A DNA stretch of 64,000 nucleotides from Blastocystis sp. Blastoise. Taxonomy: Eukaryota; Protista; Bigyra: Opalinata. Positions within the stretch are counted from its first letter, which is position 1; each line of letters begins with the position of its first letter. Shown here piece by piece: positions 1,594 through 63,214 of this stretch. The stretch is taken from the NCBI GenBank assembly GCA_039096225.1, contig JBBPEB010000028.1:744001-808000 (forward strand), written 5' to 3'. A program made the position numbers and the translations under genes. The notes below the pieces were generated by a model. The model was given only the letters and a program-made list of their open reading frames with translations. It was not told the DNA's origin and did not search any database.

Positions 1594-2106
1594 TCAAATA
1601 AATCTATTTTTTTTTATATAATTTTTATACTTTATATATAAATATGGATATAGATTTAATAATATTCTAGTTTTATTTACTATCGTCTCGTCTTTATTTG
1701 GGAACAAAATATTTCTTATTGTTGTTTATCTATTTTTGTTTTAGTCTGTTGTTCTTGAACGTCTAAGAAAATACATATTCATTTCTATTTCAGTTTATTG
1801 TCAATTTTATTATTGAAATGAATCATCTCCTCAACGTATTTTACTAACGAATCAACTCCGTTCTTAAAACAGACTCTATTTTTTCTTAATTAGCATTTTT
1901 TCGCAATTACTATTTCTTGTTACAACACAAAACACACCATCACTTGGTCCGGAAACACAGTTCATCATCATGCTATTTTAAAAACCTTTCAATGATCCAG
2001 ATTCTTCCATGTCACTGTAATCAATGGCTTCCTATGATAAAAGTCTAGAGAATCCATAGCTTCTTTCGTCATATTCTTTATAAAAATTGAAAATTCCTTT
2101 GAAAGA

Positions 2107-2214
2107 CCCAATCAGCCCACAAAAGAACGATTAAAAAGAAGAATTTGAATCCTGTTTGTAACCAAACGTTTCCATAAAAATGTTTGGATGCAAATAATCA
2201 GTATTTGATTGGCT
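2107..2214. promoter_or_regulatory. Two CCAAT-box-like motifs upstream of selenoprotein 1
   Basis: CCCAATCAG at 2107-2115 and TGATTGGCT (reverse AGCCAATCA) at 2206-2214 match the NF-Y consensus in an otherwise very AT-rich region. Confidence 0.35.
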
Positions 2215-2290
2215 CTTTCTTTTTTCTATTTTATTTATATTATTATAGATTTCGACATAAATATTTATTTATTCAATTTTTACAATTAAT

Positions 2291-2790
2291 ATGTCAGACA
2301 ACAAATTACCCGTTATTACTATTCAGCATTGTTCTTCCTGAGGTTATGGCAATCAGGCTAGAAGATTAGGATATCGCATTGGCTCTGCGATTCCAGAACT
2401 TGAAGGTCGTATCCAGACAGAAGTCTATAGTGGAAAATCATCTGTATATACTCATGTCGTTCTTCTTTTAGAACGCTTTCTCTACATTTTATCATTCTAT
2501 CTTATAGTATTTCGGTTTTTCTGGTGCCTTCGAAGTCCTCTATGATGGTATGTATTAAGTATCATATTTTTTTGATACATGAAATTATTATATATGTTTA
2601 TATATATATATATTTATCTTATTCATTATTTTAAAATATTTTTAGATGTAGTTATATATTCAAAATTACAAGAAGGAAGAATACCAAATCCAGATGTATA
2701 TTTCTTTTTTTTTATTCATATATATATATATATAACTATTTTATATAGGAGATTATTGCCCTTATCTATAACAGAATACATAAAGAATAA
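2291..2790 (+). CDS. Rdx-family (SelW/SelT/SelH-like) selenoprotein, paralogue 1; in-frame TGA (Sec) at 2339-2341
   Basis: Exons 2291-2443, 2508-2547, 2646-2695, 2749-2790 (all GT-AG) give MSDNKLPVITIQHCSS-U-GYGNQARRLGYRIGSAIPELEGRIQTEVYSGKSSYFGFSGAFEVLYDDVVIYSKLQEGRIPNPDEIIALIYNRIHKE*. It has the CxxU, GAFEV and SKL..GR.P...EI Rdx motifs and a SECIS in the 3'UTR. Confidence 0.93.
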
Positions 2791-2884
2791 TTGCTTCTCT
2801 TGAAATATTTTATATATACTCTTTTTTTTTAATAAATCTATTTAATATTTGTTTACATTATATAGAATCATTAATATATTATCT

Positions 2885-3030
2885 TTCATGTATATACTTA
2901 ATCTATAAAATTTTTGATACAATTCTTGTATTTTGATGATTATCTATTGAGAAAGCTTTACTGAGCATCAATAGTATATGAATAAATTCTTATAGACATA
3001 TATTTGCCTATATATGTGAATATATATGAA
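2885..3030 (+). ncRNA. SECIS element (form 2 core 2936-2982) inside an extended multi-stem 3'UTR structure
   Basis: ATGAT(2936-40), helix TATCTATTGA/TCAATAG(T)ATA, apical AAA plus ministem GCT/AGC, then TGAA(2979-82). It lies ~145 nt after the stop of a CxxU gene and is near-identical to the core behind paralogue 2. Confidence 0.9.
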
Positions 3031-3457
3031 TTATTTTATATTTATGTATTGTTTATAATGTCTTTTTGCAATCTATTTATGGTTTTGTTCATATGTTTTT
3101 ATTTTCAGATGAAATAAGTCAACTAGATCATGGTTTATTTCATTCGTAGCATTTGTGAGATACTCGTTATATAATATGATAAAGATAAATTGCTTTTATT
3201 GCAGATATCCATAGAATTAAAAGAATATTCGTTTTTTTATGAAATAATATAGCCTAAATTGCATTCCTTGAGTTTCGTTCAAAGCTATAAATCACTTTAT
3301 GAAGACAAATAAATTAATGAGCACACATGACAACTCTTTAAAGGTTAAAAGATTATAATCACGAAAAATAAACTTTTTGCAACCAAATGAATTCTCTTTT
3401 CCACAAAAAATTAATTTGTTTTTAAATATATTTTATTTTAGCAAAAACAAAAAGAAA

Positions 3458-3920
3458 ATGAATACGTTTTTCATTCGTGCGTTGGCTACCTTAAAGAGCC
3501 CATCTATTAAGATTCTTCATTGTACATCCTGAGGTTACGCTAACATGACTAATCAGATGGTTAGTAGAATAGGCTATGCAATTCCTTCATTAAAAGGAAA
3601 GATAACAGACTCAAAGTATAAGCCTGCATCTGGAATTGTATTTTTGTATAGTATTCTATCATAATAATTTCATTTCTAGTCGTTTGGACCAACAGGAGCT
3701 TTTGAAATCTATTATAATGGTACACAATTTATATATATAAGCTGATTCTATGTATATACAAACTATATTATTATAGATGAACTTATCTTTTCCAAATTAA
3801 AGGAAGGAAGAGTTCCTGATCCTGAAGTATTTCCATATAATATTCATTATTTATTGCTTATTCTATTCTTCTATATAAATATAGGAAATTATAAAGTTAA
3901 TAAAGGAAAAAATGGAGTAA
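3458..3920 (+). CDS. Rdx-family selenoprotein, paralogue 2; in-frame TGA (Sec) at 3530-3532; N-terminal extension resembling a mitochondrial presequence
   Basis: Exons 3458-3637, 3680-3719, 3777-3826, 3885-3920 give MNTFFIRALATLKSPSIKILHCTS-U-GYANMTNQMVSRIGYAIPSLKGKITDSKYKPASGISFGPTGAFEIYYNDELIFSKLKEGRVPDPEEIIKLIKEKME*. The three intron positions and phases match paralogue 1. Confidence 0.93.
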
Positions 3921-3990
3921 TTTCAAAAATCTCCTTATATTTTATATATTTGTTTTTAAAGATGTGTTTAATATATGATATGTTTTCTTT

Positions 3991-4138
3991 AATTTATTAT
4001 TCTTAATCTATATGCTTTATAATACAATTCTATTTGTATTTTGATGATTATCTATTGATAAAACTGGTTTTATAGTCTCAATAGTATATGAATAAATCTA
4101 TATAGAGATACATTAGCCTATGTATTGAATAATAAATT
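3991..4138 (+). ncRNA. SECIS element (form 2 core 4044-4092) inside an extended multi-stem 3'UTR structure
   Basis: ATGAT(4044-48), TATCTATTGA, TAAA, ministem ACT/AGT, TCAATAGTATA, TGAA(4089-92). The ministem shows a compensatory change (G-C to A-U) relative to copy 1. Confidence 0.9.
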
Positions 4139-5115
4139 TCATTGAAATCATATGATATTCATTGTATTCAATTGATATTTTATTTATTTGTTTTCTTTAA
4201 TGTTTGCTTTATTTCTTACATATAAACATCGCTTGATTCAAATAAACAATTGATAATTTCCTTTTTTTCTTTTCTTTTTAAAAGAATAAATAGATTCAAC
4301 ATCTTCTCTCACTTTTGTAACAATTAACATGACAATAATTGATTGCCACTATCGACAAAAACTTAAGTTAACTACATTCAAAAAGAAATTACACTCTCCT
4401 AAATAAATCGTTTATCACAATTTTCAGTGATAATTAATAGATTTAAGAAATAATTCATGGAAAGGCTACTTATTTATTAAAATCAATAAGTACGAGTTAA
4501 AATAAATTCAAAATTGTGTTTCTTATTATATTCATATATATTTTATGTATATAAAATAAGACTCACATTAATTGAAGCACTGTAATAATTCATTTGATGC
4601 AAAATTGTTCTATCTGATAAAAATAACTGACACAATCAACAATATGAATTCAATTAATTATCAAAGTGTAGTATATATACTATGAATATATAAAAATAAC
4701 TTGATTGCAGAAAGTATTGTTGATGATAATCATCATTTGTATGTTATAATAATGTCAAAACTATGTATAACTATGAAATTATTAACTGTTAAACCATTTA
4801 AAGATATTATTACATAACTAATCACAGAGATCAAGAAGATATCAGTAACCATGAATGACAAATTATAGTTTATTTTTCATTTTTGCTCTTCACATAAAGT
4901 CATTCATTCATTATTCGATCATTTATAAGTTTATTACTCACATATCATTGACATCTCAAAAGATATTTAAAAAAAAATAAAACTTGTTAGAATCATTTGT
5001 GTGGTGTTTTTTGTGAATATTTGCTTTAACAAGTTTCAAAAGATTATGGTTGAATATCTTAGTAGATGATGGAAGTCATAATTATTTTTATCTGTTACGT
5101 TTCTCTATTCTCATA

Positions 5116-8231: not shown

Positions 8232-9788
8232 TTAACGTACCTTATTAAATTCATAATTCACATGATTTTCTTGAATAAATAAAGAATCACTCAATTGTTG
8301 TTTGAATATATCAATTTGTTTATTCGAAATACATTTATAATAATCTATATAATTTAATATAAAGATAAAGATAACATATATACAATCAAAACAAATATAT
8401 TTCAATTTAGGAATCTTTCCATTAATTACAAAATTGATAATTTTTATTAATAGTTCCTCATCACAAATATCTATAAAAAATGAAATTTCATAAATAAAAA
8501 AAATATATATATACATAATTTTAGACTTCTTATGTTTTGAGTTTTATTTATATTTATACAATCAATTAATGTTTCTATTTCATATTTATTCATCATTCCA
8601 TTTTCAGTACCAATAATTGTATTTATAAATGAATGACTATCATATTTACATCGGAAAATAGAAGTATTTGGGTCATATATATAATCACTATCATAATCAT
8701 ATTCCTCATCTATAGAATAGCAATATTCATGAATATGAATAGAATTATTATTGATGAAATACTACCTAATTGGACAATAGTTGAGGATAAAAAGTTATTA
8801 TTATTCATATAGTTACAAAATTGTGTTATAAAAGAAATCCACCATTCATTATCATGTTGATTATCTATATTCACATATTACATAATAATAATAAATATTA
8901 TATAAAAAAAATGCATACATAAATATACATGATTGATACTATAAAATATTATTATTTATATTATAAATATATATACAAATCTTGATATATTTTAATTGAG
9001 GGAAATTATCTAAAGTATATAGTTTGAGAAAGTCATCATCTGGTATATCCTCAATATCTAAATTAATATTTAAAAATAATACTAGCGTGAAATATATAAT
9101 ATATTATGATTGAAATAGTACATATTTAATATATATACCTAGTCTTAAATGAGTTGTATTATGGAAGCAACCTTTGAGAATTAATCGATTTATAAAAGAC
9201 ATGTAGCAACCTAATAAGAATAGTAATTAAAAGTAATTAAATAAATGATCAAAACATATAATAATAATAAATATTAATAATTACTATTTATTATAACAAT
9301 AGAAGCCTTAGGAATTAATTTAATCATAATATTTTCATATACAGTTAAATATTCAGAGAATGAATCTTCATTAATATTATATACTATATATATATTCATA
9401 TGTTGTATAATAGAATATACAATAAATCGTTAATTCATGAATAGTATTAAACTTATTATCCTTAAAAAGAGTTGAAATCCATGTTAAATATTCTATACTT
9501 ATATTCTCATCAACTATAAATAGTATACAAAGCATAATAATAATAATAATATATATATATAATATACAAAGAATAGTTAACTTATTCAAATGTTGTAATA
9601 CACTACTCTTTAAGAATCTCTCTAATGAATTTCTTTTATCAATTTCACTTTGATCATCATGGTTATTATTATTATTATCATCATCATTATCATTATGGTT
9701 ATTATTATTATCATTATCATTATGGTTATTATTATCATTATGGTTATTATTATTATCATCATCATTATCATCATCATTATCATTATGG

Positions 9789-9822
<34 letters not shown>

Positions 9823-12213
9823 CATCATTATCATCATTATAATAGTCATTATCATTATCATTATCTTGTTCTTTATCTATAAACAAATAAATATTAATTT
9901 TTAATATTATATATCAGCAATAAATCAATTATATATATTAATACATACCATTAAATAGTATTTCCAAACGATCAATATGATGCTTATACTTTTCAAAAAA
10001 ATCTAATATTTGGAGATTTTCAGAATGAAAAGAATCAACTGTATAGAACAGTATATATATAATATAAAAAAGAATACATTAAAAGAATAAATAAAAGGAC
10101 ATACTAGAAAGACGATCAAAGAAAATTAGATCTTTCTCGAATAAAACTTCTAAATGTGGAAAATACCAAACCAATTCATCTATAAAAAAGCAAATAAATA
10201 TAATAAATATATTTAGTAATATGATTAAAAATTTATATATATATATATTACATGTATATATATCACATAGATCAATATAAATTGAATAAGTATAAACTAG
10301 TTTATCTAAAAGTAGAGCTAGTTCTTCTTTTTCAATATCCTGAAATCCATATATACGAATAGTATCAATCATAGAAATTAAATTAGCAGGAAAAAGAGAC
10401 TCAAAATTGTAAGTATCTAGATTATGAAAATAGTTTATGATTTATATATAAATATACATATTGTAATTTTGTAGTCTATAATATGTAATTTAGGGAAGTT
10501 TTCTTTCTTTATTAAAGATAATTTGAAAGACTCTATATATATATATATATATATATAAACATATACTATCATCATATATAAGTTCAGTAACATTAGGAAA
10601 TACATGAGTTGCCATTATTTTCATAAACAGTTGATCATCATCTTCAATAGTCAATTCTTTAACTATATTATACATAATATTAATAATAATAATTAAAAGA
10701 AATACTCCAATGAACACTTAACTCGGTTAAACAATCATAAAAGCCTTCTTCAAATAATTTCATAATCATAGTATCACATTGATTAATCCCACCTAAAATA
10801 ACTTATTCTATTTATTATATATATTTATTTACGTGTATCTAAAATGACTTTGGAAATACACAAATAGGAAGGAAGACGTAATAATTGAGAGATACCGCCT
10901 TTAGAAGCTACTTTACCAATACTATTTAATATATAAGTAAAAATGCATAATATTAAAAAATAATATAATTTACTAGAATGTTTTATCACCTGTTTTATCT
11001 ATAAGTATTAATAATGATAATAATTTAAATATATATATATATACAATAATCATATTGAATAGTAACATAATCTTTTAACATATATTCTTCTTCTGATCTA
11101 CTTATTTCTACATTCGAATAATCATTTGTATATATAGCTTCATTAACTATATATTTATATAATTTAGGTAACGCATTTTTTTTTCTTCTTTCAGTAATAG
11201 AATCTATAAATTTATGAGAATAATTTAAATGATTAAGATCTAAAGAAGAAATCTTATTATATTCATTCATATCGGATTCAGTATAATACTCATATTTTTC
11301 AGGATTCTCTATTTCATAGTAACATCTACCAAATAAACGTAAATATTCTATCATATATTCATCACTATTTGGATTTAATAATTGTTCACTTTTCTTATAT
11401 TTTGTAGTTACTATTTATATTATAAAATATATAATATAAAATATATTTATATACCAGCTATCTTCAATTCTTTTAATGCTGGAAAAAGATCCTTAATAGA
11501 GGAAGGACATATATATTCTAATGGAGTATTCGAAGAATATTCATCTATATAGATATTATTATTTATTTATATATAAAATATATACAAATAATTTCAACTT
11601 CAGTAATATTCATCATTTTAAAAAGAAGAGAATAATATAAGAATTCATCTTTCCATTGAGGTGTAAATAATCCTATATATATAAAATAACATGATTATAA
11701 ATAATAATATAGAATTACCTCTTATACTTATTTTTGTTTTATATGAACTAAATATTTCCAAAGGTAGATTCGATGGGTGATTATTATTATAATATCCATA
11801 TATAATACATTTATTCTCTTTCCAATAATTATAGAATAACTCTCTAATATGAAATAATAAATCGCTTTGCTTTTCACTATCAATTGTAACTGAATATTCA
11901 ACAAGTATTTCATATATATCATAACTATCTTTCAAATTTAATGAAAAAAAATCAATATTATCTTTCATTAAAAAAGAAATCACTTTTTCTAGGTAAAAAG
12001 GAAGCATATCGATATAATAACTACCATCTTCATATTTATCAGTACGTTCAATAATATTATAAAATGGAAATTGAGGATATTTCTCCATAAATTCTTTAGA
12101 AATCCATAATTTTGTCTCATCTTGAAACGTAAATAAGTCTAAAAAAAATAAATAGTTCCTAATTAAATTAAAATACATTTCTCTTCAGTTCGGAAAGTTT
12201 CAGAGCCAGGCAT
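8232..12213 (-). CDS. Large multi-exon hypothetical protein with N-terminal BTB/POZ-like domain and leucine-rich-repeat-like C-terminal part
   Basis: ATG 12213 MPGSETFRTEEK|..LFTFQDETKLWISKEFMEKYPQFPFY...DGSYYIDMLPFYLEKVISFL is BTB-like. Later exons repeat FP.L..L motifs (VFPNVTELIY, NFPQLKYI, KIPKLKYICF), and there is an Asp/Asn-rich insert at 9660-9865. Confidence 0.6.
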
Positions 12214-12446
12214 CACTTAAATTCAATTATAATGACAAAATGATTAGAGATAAGTATGCTTAGAAGATAGTATTATAAATAAACAATAAATAAATACTCT
12301 CTTACTGATTCTAATATCTTATAATAATAAATAATCATTAAGATAACAAAGTATAAAACTTGCACTAAAATTGTATAAAATGATTTCAGAAGATTTTCAG
12401 CAAATTTGTATTCAAGTTAATAAATACTTCTAGAAAGCTTCTTATT

Positions 12447-13254
12447 ATGTTACAATCATTTAAACGTGCTTTACCAAAGGTGAATACTTTAATCCGTGCA
12501 TTTGCTGGAGTTTCTTCAAACTTGAGTGATTATGAAATGTTAGATGTATATATGTTGTCATTCTATTTGTTTCAATTATAAATATTCAAGTTTTATGAAA
12601 ATAAACAGTCATCATTTTCTAAAAATTAAGTACTTTATTTGTTTAATAGAAATTGGAAGGTTCTAATTTTGATGCTTATGATGAAGAAGGGTTTTCAATA
12701 AATAATGTATATCATAAAGGATCAGTCATGGCGTTTAATAATAATGCATTCTTCTGGAATGCCAAGTCATTTCAAGATATTACTCCTGAATCTTTGTCAC
12801 TCATCACTTTTTATAATCCATCTATTGATATTTTACTTATTGGAACAGGAAAATCATTTGAACGAGTTCCTAAGAATGTGGAGAAATTTCTCGATGATAA
12901 TCATATTGCCTATGAATCTATGAATTCAGTATAGAATTATAATATTATATATTATATTTTTATTATTTATTTGTTTATATTTATGATTTTTATTATTTAT
13001 TTGTTTATATTTATTATTTATTTATTATTTTATTTTTATTATATTTCTATTTTATATTTATTATTAATAATATATATATATATAACATAAAAAATATCTA
13101 GGCTAGTGCATGTGCTACATTTAATTTTTTACATAATGAGAATCGTCAAGTAGCAGCAGCAATCTTAGCTATTGAATCTAAGCCTTATGTATATGATGAT
13201 GTTATAAAGAAGAATATGAATGAATTTGGTCATTCACATGAAATACAACAATAA
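12447..13254 (+). CDS. NDUFAF3: Complex I assembly factor NDUFAF3 (Mth938/DUF498 domain), mitochondrial
   Basis: Presequence-like MLQSFKRALPKVNTLIRAFA, then DITPESLSL....PSIDILLIGTG and YESMNS|ASACATFNFLHNENRQVAAAI; 3 exons; TAA 13252-13254. Confidence 0.9.
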
Positions 13255-13658
13255 ATATATATTCATATATATAATATATATAATATATATTGATTTTCCA
13301 TTCTATTGATTTTTTATTATAATTTACATATATATATATATATTATTTATAACAAGTACATAGTTAATAACATATTTTTTTAAATATATATTTTATTTTC
13401 CGTTTTCTTTTCGATTTTATTTTTTACGTATTTTCATTAAAAGTGTATAAAATTATTTTAATTGTTTTTTAAATATATACATAATCATTAGTATATTTAC
13501 GATATACACTTTGTATTATATATATTTATTGTTTAAAGTGAATAAAAGAATTGTATATTCATATATAAATCAATAAAAAAGAAGTAAATAAAAATATTTT
13601 TTTAGATATAGACAATATATAGAATAAGCGATGTATATATAAATATAAATATATATAT

Positions 13659-15093
13659 TTATGGTTTAAAATTTGTTTTATACTTATCGGCAAGTTCGTA
13701 ATAGTTCTTGAATTCATTATTTTTATGATAAGTGCAAATCTCATTTAAAACAGAAGCTACATTATTCTATATAATAATAACAATAACAAGAAGAAGAAGA
13801 CGAAGAAGAAAAAGAAGAAGAAGAATATAGAATAATAATAATAATAATAATAGTTAATAATAATAATAAATACATAATAATAATATTAATTAATAATAAT
13901 AATGTATAAATATATATACAGAAGAAATATTGGGTAAGGTAGATAATATTTCTTTTTTAGTATAATATGCTTTTTTAGAAAATAGTTTAAAGATATGTTT
14001 TCGAATATCTGACTATATAGTAAAATAGTTAATTTTATATATATATTAATAATAACTAAAAAGATAAAGTATATATATATATTATAATGATTTAAATACT
14101 TCAGACATATTTGTTTTATTCATAGGACGAGATCGAGCTAAATCAACTTTCTAAATTAATATACATAGAATAAACAAGAATCATAATAAATATTATTAAA
14201 ATACTAATAATAATAATAAACATAATAATAAACATAATAATATATACAGTTTGTTGCATTTCAGCCTTTTTAATAGAAACTTCTCTTCTACTGACATCGG
14301 TATCTAAAGTAGCACCAACACTATATATATGTTTATATATCTAGTTTACATTATATAAAATAAATAAAATAAGAATAAAAAAAAAATATATTATTTAAAT
14401 GAATATCTAGTAAACTTAATAATTATTTTATATATATAATAAAATAAAATATATATATATTTTAAAATAAACACCTATATAACAATATACCGATTATTAT
14501 CATTTCTATAATCTTGAGTAACTCGATTGACATATTGAATAGTAGATGTTGATGGTTTCATCATATATACTTTATTCTTATATCCTTCAAATACAAATTT
14601 ATCATCATTTTGATCTACAGAAAAAAGACGCATCTTTTTACAACCTTCCATTGAATCAAAATTATAAATTAAGGGGAAATTAAGTGAATCTATAGTTGAG
14701 TCAACTTTCTTTAAAGTTTCTAAATTTAATTTCATTGATATCTAAATAAAAAAACATTATAATTTTATAAAAAATATATTATTTTGAACATACTTCTTTC
14801 TTTGATGTTTGTTTCATCTGACCAACAATATCATAGGCTATAATAAAAACATATATTTAACATAAATTGACAAATAACTTGAAAATATCATTTCTATATG
14901 ATACATACAATCAATCTTATCAATATATTTTGCAATACGATTCTATTTATATAATAATTAATGTAACTCAATCAGTAATAATAACATTATATACAGGAAT
15001 CTTCACAATCAACACTGGCTTGTTCTCTATATTTGGGTCTACAGCATAAGACTTTGCATTAGTATTAATATAAGATGAATTAGATTGTTGCAT
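13659..15093 (-). CDS. GTF2F2: Transcription factor IIF beta subunit (RAP30/Tfg2)-like, multi-exon
   Basis: N-terminal KPVLIVKIP, central MRLFS...FVFEG, and a C-terminal winged-helix pattern IRKHIFKLFSKKAYYTKKEI...VLNEICTYHKNNEFKNYYELADKY. Confidence 0.7.
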
Positions 15094-15361
15094 GCTTCAA
15101 AATAAACCGATATATTTCGAAAATAAAAATACTTCTTTTTCTCATCTTTTCTGAAATGTGCTGAATTCTAATTCATAATTTTTTTTTTGTGAAAATATTT
15201 TTTCAGTCAAGAATAATCAGCTGAATAATACAGACACAAATAATGAAAACTTGCTGATTTTATCTCTTTTTTAAATAACATTAAATGAAAAAACAAGTTG
15301 TCTATTTTAGTATTATTTTGGGATTATTTTATATATTTTTCATGTTTATAGTCCTACAGAT

Positions 15362-20489
<5,128 letters not shown>

Positions 20490-52218: not shown

Positions 52219-54831
<2,613 letters not shown>

Positions 54832-61572: not shown

Positions 61573-63214
61573 TCACTTTTGTTGATAAAACGTACGACTT
61601 TTGATTCTATCGGATAAACTAGCATCATTACCCAAATAAGCATCCTTCTTAAATGATTGTAAATAATTATTATTTTCATCATAATTCTTCTTCAACTCTT
61701 CTTCTTCTTCTGTTTCTTTTATATCCTTTTTATGATTCTCTAATAATCGCTTATATCGCAAATCTTGATTCACCGAAGCATCTTGTTTCATTTCATTTAA
61801 TCGCTTCTGAACTTCTTCTTCAGTTAATTGTTTATCTTTTTTATTATTTCTATCTTTTGTATATGTATTTGAATTCTTGTGAGAATCATCTATTTTTCGA
61901 GTCTCATAAGTATCTCTTGTATTACTATTCTTATTATTATTATGTCTACTATTACTTCTACTTCTATATCTAGAATGTCTACTATTACTTCTACTTCTTC
62001 TTCTATTACTATTACTTCTGTGTCTAGAATGTCTTCTTTTAGAATCAACTCTATTATCTCTATATTCTGATCTTTTCTGTATAGTATTATTCTCTTTCTT
62101 CTTATCTATATCTATATCACTATCATCATTCTCTCTAGAAGGAGAAGAAGAAGAAGACGATTTTTTATGATTTTTTGAACGATAATCACGGGAATGGTGA
62201 TGATGATCTCTTTATATAATATCATATAATAAAAATAATATAATAAAAATAATATAATAAAAATAATAATAAAAATAATAATAAAAATAATATAATAAAA
62301 ATAATATAATAAAAATAATATAATAAAAATAACAACCATACCTTTCACTATTTGATTTCTATATAAATATAATAATTATATATATGATTATTTATACATA
62401 CAGAAGAATAACTTGTTTTACTGTGCTTATCATTTTCTGATGATTTCAACATATCAGCTGTACTCGTTGAAATACCTACTGGCTTCCCTAATTGCTTTGA
62501 TAACTATAATAATAATATAAATAGACATAATAAATGTTATAAACATAATAAATGTTATAAACATAATAATAATAAACATAATAATAAACATAATAATAAT
62601 AAACATAATAAATGTTATAAACATAATAAATGTTATAAACATAATAATAAACATAATAATAAACATATATATACGGCTCCATGAGTTGTTTCTTACGTCT
62701 TGGATTCTCTAATAGTTTCTTCCTCATTTCAATTTCTTTTCGCTTCATCTCTAACAACGGGTCTTCATGAACACGACGAAAAGCCTCGGTTTCAGAGGAA
62801 ACAACTGGAGCATTAGCTATACTGGCACCGGCGATTGAACCATCTTCAAGCTTCGAAAATGTATTTTTATCATCTTTATCAAAATCAACAGCTGCCTTAC
62901 CAGTTAAATAATCTTCATCAGTTGGACCTTCTCTCTTATACGTATACATCCATTCTACACACTCTTTCTTATCATCTTCAATATTTCGATCGTGAATAGC
63001 TGTGATCTCCATCAATTGGCGCTCATCTTTTATCTTCTTCTGTAATTCTTTGATTTTCTTCTCTTCAGCTGCCTTCTCTTGCTCTCTTATCCACACAGCC
63101 TCTCTGTTCTATCCAAAATAAACATATAATGACATATAATAAAGAACAACTTACATTTCTATTACCTGGATTCCATTTCTTTTTCGACAAAAACTCTAAA
63201 GGAGTCTTTACCAT
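61573..63214 (-). CDS. CWC25: Pre-mRNA splicing factor CWC25
   Basis: FLSKKKWNPGNRN|NREAVWIREQ....E.KKI.EL.K.I.DER, VEWMY, DEDYLTGK, EDPLLEMKRKE, RS-rich middle, LTEEEVQKRLNEMKQDA, SLSDRI; ends at a TGA stop. Confidence 0.9.

Follow-up and report, generated by a model that had tools for sequence, protein, structure and literature searches.

The 64,000-nt stretch of DNA analyzed here (the window) corresponds to C5:744001-808000 of the 33.3-Mb, 34-contig genome of the gut protist Blastocystis sp. Blastoise, which has 22% GC, and carries close to its beginning two candidate selenoprotein genes of the Rdx (SelT/SelW/SelH) family, which we refer to as genes A and B. Reading and translating window positions 1800-4500 bore out what the initial annotation had described at this locus: two four-exon genes with matching intron positions, each with an in-frame TGA in the context HCxS-TGA-GY. 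The genes lie head-to-tail on the plus strand (Table 1), with coding lengths of 94 codons for gene A (2291-2790) and 101 codons for gene B (3458-3920), and each has one in-frame TGA (codon 17 of gene A, codon 25 of gene B). All six introns are bounded by GT and AG, with five starting GTAT and one GTAC; they range from 42 to 98 nt and have a GC content of 9-30%, vs. 34-36% for the exons of both genes. Intron positions and phases (0/1/0) are identical in the two genes, as are the lengths of exon 2 (40 nt) and exon 3 (50 nt). The shared motifs quoted in the initial annotation (RIG.AIP.L.G.I, GAFE, and SKL.EGR.P.P.EII) were all found, and the pair is indeed invisible to the open reading frame (ORF) track, where no listed ORF of at least 60 aa spans the coding exons of either gene in frame and only fragments appear. 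The N-terminus of gene B (window 3458-3505) has eight residues more than that of gene A; it is basic (R, K, K) with no acidic residues, and the extension, MNTFFIRALATLKSPS, is rich in hydrophobic and hydroxylated residues.

Table 1. Positions in the window of the exons, introns, and selenocysteine insertion sequence (SECIS)-like elements of genes A and B. Sec, selenocysteine.
Feature	Position	Strand	Details
Gene A exon 1	2291-2443	+	51 codons; start ATG 2291; predicted Sec codon TGA 2339-2341 within HCSS-U-GY; TIGR02174 match from model position 1
Gene A exon 2	2508-2547	+	40 nt; YFGFSGAFEVLYD, then 1 nt of a codon split by the intron
Gene A introns 1 and 2	2444-2507 and 2548-2645	+	GT-AG
Gene A exon 3	2646-2695	+	50 nt; VVIYSKLQEGRIPNPD; stop-free piece matches TIGR02174 positions 44-67, E 0.052
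Gene A exon 4	2749-2790	+	EIIALIYNRIHKE; stop TAA 2788-2790
Gene A SECIS-like element, type 2	2927-2990	+	AUGA 2936-2939, AAA 2952-2954, mini-helix 2955-2966, 3' UGA 2979-2981; core 146 nt past the stop
Gene B exon 1	3458-3637	+	60 codons; start ATG 3458; predicted Sec codon TGA 3530-3532 within HCTS-U-GY; TIGR02174 positions 1-52
Gene B exon 2	3680-3719	+	40 nt; SFGPTGAFEIYYN, then 1 nt of a codon split by the intron
Gene B exon 3	3777-3826	+	50 nt; ELIFSKLKEGRVPDPE; Pfam Rdx E 0.02, TIGR02174 E 0.006
Gene B exon 4	3885-3920	+	EIIKLIKEKME; stop TAA 3918-3920
Gene B SECIS-like element, type 2	4035-4100	+	AUGA 4044-4047, AAA 4060-4062, mini-helix 4063-4076, 3' UGA 4089-4091; core 124 nt past the stop

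Similarity between the two copies runs straight through the TGA. We compared genes A and B piece by piece, scoring each piece with BLOSUM62 in the proposed frame and in the two other frames. Exon 1 scored 19 in frame before the TGA (-9 and -9 out of frame) and 55 after it (1 and -12); the corresponding values were 38 for exon 2 (-12 and -11), 56 for exon 3 (25 and 32), and 14 for exon 4 (-10 and -9). High scores are thus confined to the proposed frame on both sides of the TGA, consistent with the earlier claim that protein similarity continues past this codon. At the DNA level, the copies are 55-74% identical in exons and 45-57% identical in introns, with the latter range close to background for sequence of such composition, and the two proteins are ~45% identical. 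This difference between exons and introns, together with the frame-specific similarity, implies that the gene duplication is old and that both copies have been under protein-level constraint on either side of the TGA. Past the TGA, exon 1 of gene A contains no Met codon, whereas gene B has Met codons soon after it; gene A can therefore yield no Rdx-type product unless the UGA is decoded, and cannot be rescued by a downstream start.

In a six-frame search of the whole 33-Mb genome, TIGR02174 (CXXU_selWTH) matched at these two loci only. Gene B aligns to the model over positions 1-52 (24.4 bits) and 50-68 (14.2 bits), with a reported sum of 40.9 and a cut-off of 34.2, and its exons 2-3 score 23.2 bits against Pfam Rdx (PF10262), for which the cut-off is 22.6. 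The Rdx assignment, for which a hidden Markov model search had been proposed as a check, accordingly stood, with gene B passing both cut-offs and gene A matching TIGR02174 over positions 1-67 (23.7 bits, E 9.5e-4) through exons 1 and 3. That gene A falls below the TIGR02174 cut-off can be traced to its structure: of its exons, only the first and third lie in a common frame. When exon 3 is considered alone, Rdx or TIGR02174 is the sole family match for each gene (E 0.006-0.05). Since both TIGR02174 matches begin at model position 1 and run through the TGA, this codon sits on the U of the CxxU redox motif, which reads HCSS-TGA-GY in gene A and HCTS-TGA-GY in gene B and is separated from GAFE by ~40 residues in both genes.

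Within this family, the SelW-like branch appears to fit better than SelT or SelH on the strength of length, of a CxxU helix that seems to lead to the GAFE strand with no insertion on the way, and of the S-K...G-R-x-P...E-I-I tail; the subfamily criteria applied to genes A and B, like the motif comparison with mammalian SelW, follow general knowledge of the family rather than the output of a tool. SelW proteins are short (about 85-100 aa) and have neither the insertion of SelT nor the basic tail of SelH; among protist selenoproteins, the SelW-like family is a common one. With SELENOW and the SelW-like proteins of protists, algae, and bacteria, genes A and B share small size (94 and 101 aa), a hydrophobic first strand leading directly into the CxxU and then G-Y, the G-x-F-E-V/I strand, the S-K...G-R-x-P segment, and a short C-terminal helix, and their profile matches jointly cover model positions 1-68. 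They differ from SelW in the redox motif, which is C-S-S-U in gene A and C-T-S-U in gene B (the SelH-type tetrapeptide) as opposed to C-G-A-U in vertebrate SelW; in an Asp, coded across the phase-1 intron, that replaces the usual Gly before the last strand; and in the presence of two diverged tandem copies, one of them with an N-terminal extension. SelT and SelH, as members of the Rdx superfamily, would have the CxxU in a thioredoxin-like (beta-alpha-beta-beta-beta-alpha) fold in common with the pair. SelT, however, has a long insert or a hydrophobic segment that separates its CxxU helix from the GxFEV strand, and SelH a basic or AT-hook-like tail, whereas the predicted products of genes A and B, as judged from sequence, seem to have neither and are SelW-like in length.

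Both genes are followed by a predicted type 2 SECIS element in the 3' untranslated region (3'UTR), with ~360-380 nt of mRNA between the UGA codon and the element. Each consists of the AUGA, 12 nt of helix II, an unpaired AAA, a mini-helix, a return strand with one bulged U, and the UGA. An alignment of the two 3'UTRs shows that conservation across the duplicated unit as a whole peaks in this block: the arms of the element are identical over 27 nt (the UUGUAUUUUGAUGAUUAUCUAUUGA region) and 21 nt (UCAAUAGUAUAUGAAUAAAU), and the apical part has diverged with the 4-bp mini-helix still paired, as a G-C pair in one copy corresponds to A-U in the other and U-G to G-U. Known type 2 (form 2) SECIS elements share with these the 5' AUGA and 3' GA of the non-Watson-Crick core, a helix II of ~11-12 nt, the unpaired AAA, the extra apical mini-helix, and the 3'UTR location, while the elements of genes A and B are distinguished by being very AT-rich, by the one-base bulge in helix II, and by an AAUAAA in the 3' arm. 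This 3' arm (2979-2987 and 4089-4097) reads UGAAUAAAU in both copies, which makes for an overlap between the SECIS core and a canonical AAUAAA; the element of a thioredoxin reductase (TrxR) gene discussed below has UGAAUAAUA in its place. The AAUAAA may reflect a coupling of 3'-end formation with the element, or may be a part-cause of its extreme conservation.

The same architecture recurs behind two further genes of this genome. With a covariance model built from the A and B elements, the top non-self match in 67 kb searched on both strands was an element in the 3'UTR of the SPS2 gene (25.1 bits, E 0.012), and a three-sequence model then ranked an element in the 3'UTR of the Sec-type TrxR gene first among seven loci (17.5 bits, E 0.32). 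All four elements have a common layout of GAUGA, 11-12 nt, AAA, a 3-4 bp mini-helix, and (U/A)GA, and their minimum-free-energy folds, calculated separately, show the same architecture. In the three-sequence alignment, the proportion of cells that pair is 96%, and both sides have changed in 7 of the 18 pairs; with the register slid, pairing drops to 30-52%. In genome-wide scans with models R1 and R2, 150 of about 9,000-16,000 first-look candidates were scored; the extra matches on C14 and C8 were discarded as chance, having no AUGA core or no UGA gene upstream. A pattern scanner for SECIS elements was also dropped, as it was unspecific and the true candidates fell under its threshold because of the bulge.

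The initial annotation had further proposed that this organism has working Sec machinery, and both tRNA-Sec and EFSec, the absence of which would have spoken against that proposal, are encoded in the genome. Two tRNA-Sec genes (C5:69863 and C14:272975) score 72.3 bits against a gathering score of 47 and are called SeC with anticodon TCA by ARAGORN, and the fourth domain of eEFSec is found on C31 above its cut-off, with 0 of 14 prokaryote controls matching. SepSecS is encoded by a multi-exon gene on C13. The SPS2 on C34 is itself Sec-containing, with an in-frame TGA (C34:268394) at the canonical site, ...TKMKG-U-GCKLPQ..., and its type 2 SECIS-like element (C34:270404-270460, or L013:2243-2299) lies ~330 nt past the TAA stop. 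A P-loop kinase ORF (CGAPASGKST..., LVDDTMHLRSMRK) at nt 1207-1695 of L031 (C33:1207028-1210186) is probably the O-phosphoseryl-tRNA(Sec) kinase (PSTK); its best NCBIfam matches are TIGR03575 selen_PSTK_euk (E 1e-12 on an exon piece, under the equivalog cut-off) and the archaeal PSTK model (4e-11). A KTI12 match on C26, first weighed as PSTK, was rejected as KTI12 itself and is distinct from the C33 candidate. Thus, in a search that covered five of the six components named at the outset, tRNA-Sec, EFSec, SecS, and SPS2 were recovered and PSTK is probable. Beyond these components, the TrxR on C3 (L040; C3:617372-620542) ends ...KKGS-C-U-G-stop (TGC TGA GGT TAA, nt 1925-1936 of L040), and its SECIS-like element is located on the same strand at nt 2259-2315, ~320 nt downstream of the stop.

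Three observations support UGA as an ordinary stop. UAA and UGA have been described as stops in Blastocystis (Lind et al., Genome Res 2025; PMC12129017), and six intron-free HSP70 ORFs in this genome contain no in-frame TGA. Within the window, TGA had been taken as the true stop of a CWC25 gene; Pfam CWC25 matches the minus strand at 51.5 bits (62491-63096), and ...FYQQK-TGA closes what is likely the last exon, at 61573, so this claim is plausible, with the assignment of that exon unproven. Several HSP70 genes occur in equal-score copies at distant sites or on separate contigs (C25/C16 (x2), C4/C8, C33 (x2), and C1/C21), as do the tRNA-Sec genes (C5/C14), a pattern that points to large segmental duplications in the assembly or to haplotypes left uncollapsed. 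The SelW-like pair is found on C5 only.

The expectation that automated annotation misses or truncates these genes received indirect support. In a word search of a 5.8-billion-protein collection with the post-TGA exon-1 pieces, the gene A piece shared words with none of the proteins of 37-117 aa and the gene B piece with none of those of 24-77 aa, a test that longer or differently built models of either gene would escape; the search likewise returned no close relative of either gene. This collection includes other proteins of this genome; for example, the intron-free HSP70 on C16 is identical to KAK8807319.1 of Blastocystis sp. Blastoise. In public contigs, one protein from the window was looked up for an exact match, and none was on record. 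The word-search result is in keeping with both genes having been missed, and they are probably unannotated. With regard to prior reports, a Sec-type TrxR was predicted in Blastocystis subtype 7, and Sec insertion machinery was inferred from it (Denoeud et al. 2011; PMC3129679), which concerns the same genus and the same inference of Sec use but a protein family different from that of the SelW-like pair. Our literature search found no account of SelW-like genes in Blastocystis, with none in that paper and none in the paper on this tortoise isolate (33.3 Mb, 21-23% GC; PMC12129017), whose main text is without the string "seleno". Selenoproteins have been reported as scattered across stramenopiles (PMC4561486).

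Altogether, the gene structure, the frame-specific conservation across the UGA, the family matches, the conserved SECIS-like elements, and the presence of Sec machinery genes make it highly probable that A and B are bona fide, intact selenoprotein genes of the nuclear genome, tandemly duplicated and belonging to the SelW-like members of the Rdx thioredoxin-fold family. In the mechanism we propose, the single UGA of each mRNA would be recoded to Sec by the type 2 SECIS in the 3'UTR: SBP2 would bind the AUGA/GA kink-turn core of the element and recruit eEFSec carrying Sec-tRNA(UCA). The resulting products of 94 and 101 residues, with a CxxU after the first beta-strand, would most likely be small thiol/selenol oxidoreductases.

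Several observations weigh against this interpretation. Genes A and B are known here from DNA alone, and their transcription, Sec insertion, fold, and redox function are inferred. When scored exon by exon, gene A stays under the curated family cut-offs, and the exon-1 pieces alone have no match in Pfam, NCBIfam, or PDB sequences. The machinery search covered tRNA-Sec, SepSecS, SPS2, eEFSec, and PSTK, and the proposed recoding would depend on SBP2 as well. The elements themselves are not distinguished by stability, as the folding energies of those of genes A and B are about those of shuffles (z about 0) and, of the four elements, only that of TrxR is clearly better (z -2.9); in addition, a simple SECIS pattern scan of random AT-rich sequence returns 0-4 look-alikes in every 64 kb, so that shape alone is weak SECIS evidence in this genome. 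The three-sequence alignment was fitted to the model, and its pair counts therefore lean towards structure. Finally, the Rfam SECIS models gave no match in window 2000-4600 at E up to 10, though this silence is uninformative given that they also miss the SPS2 and TrxR elements.

Some of these observations could be accommodated by other explanations. The near-identity of the two 3'UTR blocks might stem not from SECIS function but from gene conversion in the recent past or from a poly(A)/3'-end signal common to both, as would be in keeping with the AAUAAA within UGAAUAAAU in both copies and with the slight extension of conservation past the element. We consider this unlikely: the apical part has diverged with its pairing kept between identical arms, which simple block conversion would not yield, and the same architecture is present with other helix sequences behind SPS2 and TrxR. 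A poly(A) role is moreover not exclusive, as the block can be a SECIS and a 3'-end signal together. It is very unlikely, in our estimation, that duplication was followed by the death or ongoing decay of one copy or of both, such that the TGA is a plain nonsense codon and no Rdx protein is made. Such decay would fit loci known only as DNA, a gene A that scores under the curated cut-offs exon by exon, and post-TGA exon-1 pieces that share words with no public protein model, but it does not account for a TGA kept at the same redox-motif codon in both copies. Despite ~45% protein identity, splice sites, phases, open exons, and family motifs have all been kept and the similarity is frame-specific, and no part of the unit is as well conserved as the SECIS arms; a pseudogene pair would not conserve such features.

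The chance is slimmer still that the genes are real but that their UGA is not decoded as Sec, being bypassed by a downstream start, with the ATG-to-TGA segment acting as a short upstream ORF, or read through with a standard amino acid. The Met codons soon after the TGA in gene B and the weak thermodynamic support for the SECIS elements speak for this possibility, yet exon 1 of gene A has no Met past the TGA, and a downstream start would lose beta-strand 1 and the CxxU, which are conserved in both copies and match the family model from position 1. The genome, furthermore, has a Sec pathway and the same SECIS architecture behind SPS2 and TrxR. Recoding of the UGA as Sec in both genes is thus the explanation that we favor.

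Two other features of the window are low in complexity. At 53531-54155 there is a ~600-nt trinucleotide (ATT/AAT-type) microsatellite, which appears in the ORF list as poly-Ile from one strand and as poly-Leu from the opposite one. The segment 16485-20489 stays open in one frame for 1334 codons; this frame has no Pfam domain and contains very long runs of poly-Asn and of Asn/Met repeats, as is typical of the expansion of low-complexity sequence that has been reported for tortoise isolates.

The N-terminal extension of gene B may, speculatively, be a short presequence for the mitochondrion-related organelle. A broader scenario, which we offer tentatively and consider doubtful as a whole, would have MNTFFIRALATLKSPS direct the gene B product to the anaerobic mitochondrion-related organelle and the gene A product remain cytosolic, with the AAUAAA-bearing SECIS arms representing a lineage-specific coupling of Sec recoding and 3'-end formation. 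If both the divided roles and the coupling were true, then, together with the other selenoprotein genes of this genome, they would mean that the tortoise Blastocystis lineage keeps a selenoproteome exceeding the one described so far for the genus.

In conclusion, the inference of Sec use in Blastocystis dates back to 2011, and the SelW-like pair are ordinary additions to a well-known family that leave knowledge of SelW or of Sec decoding unchanged. They add two probably unannotated selenoprotein genes to a recent Blastocystis genome whose paper does not discuss selenium and, together with Sec-containing SPS2 and TrxR, tRNA-Sec, eEFSec, SepSecS, and a probable PSTK, they point to a Sec pathway kept in a strictly host-associated anaerobe. 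The genome-specific SECIS consensus described here (GAUGA, 11-12 nt, AAA, mini-helix, (U/A)GA), which is missed by Rfam, may serve as an aid for re-annotating very AT-rich protist genomes.

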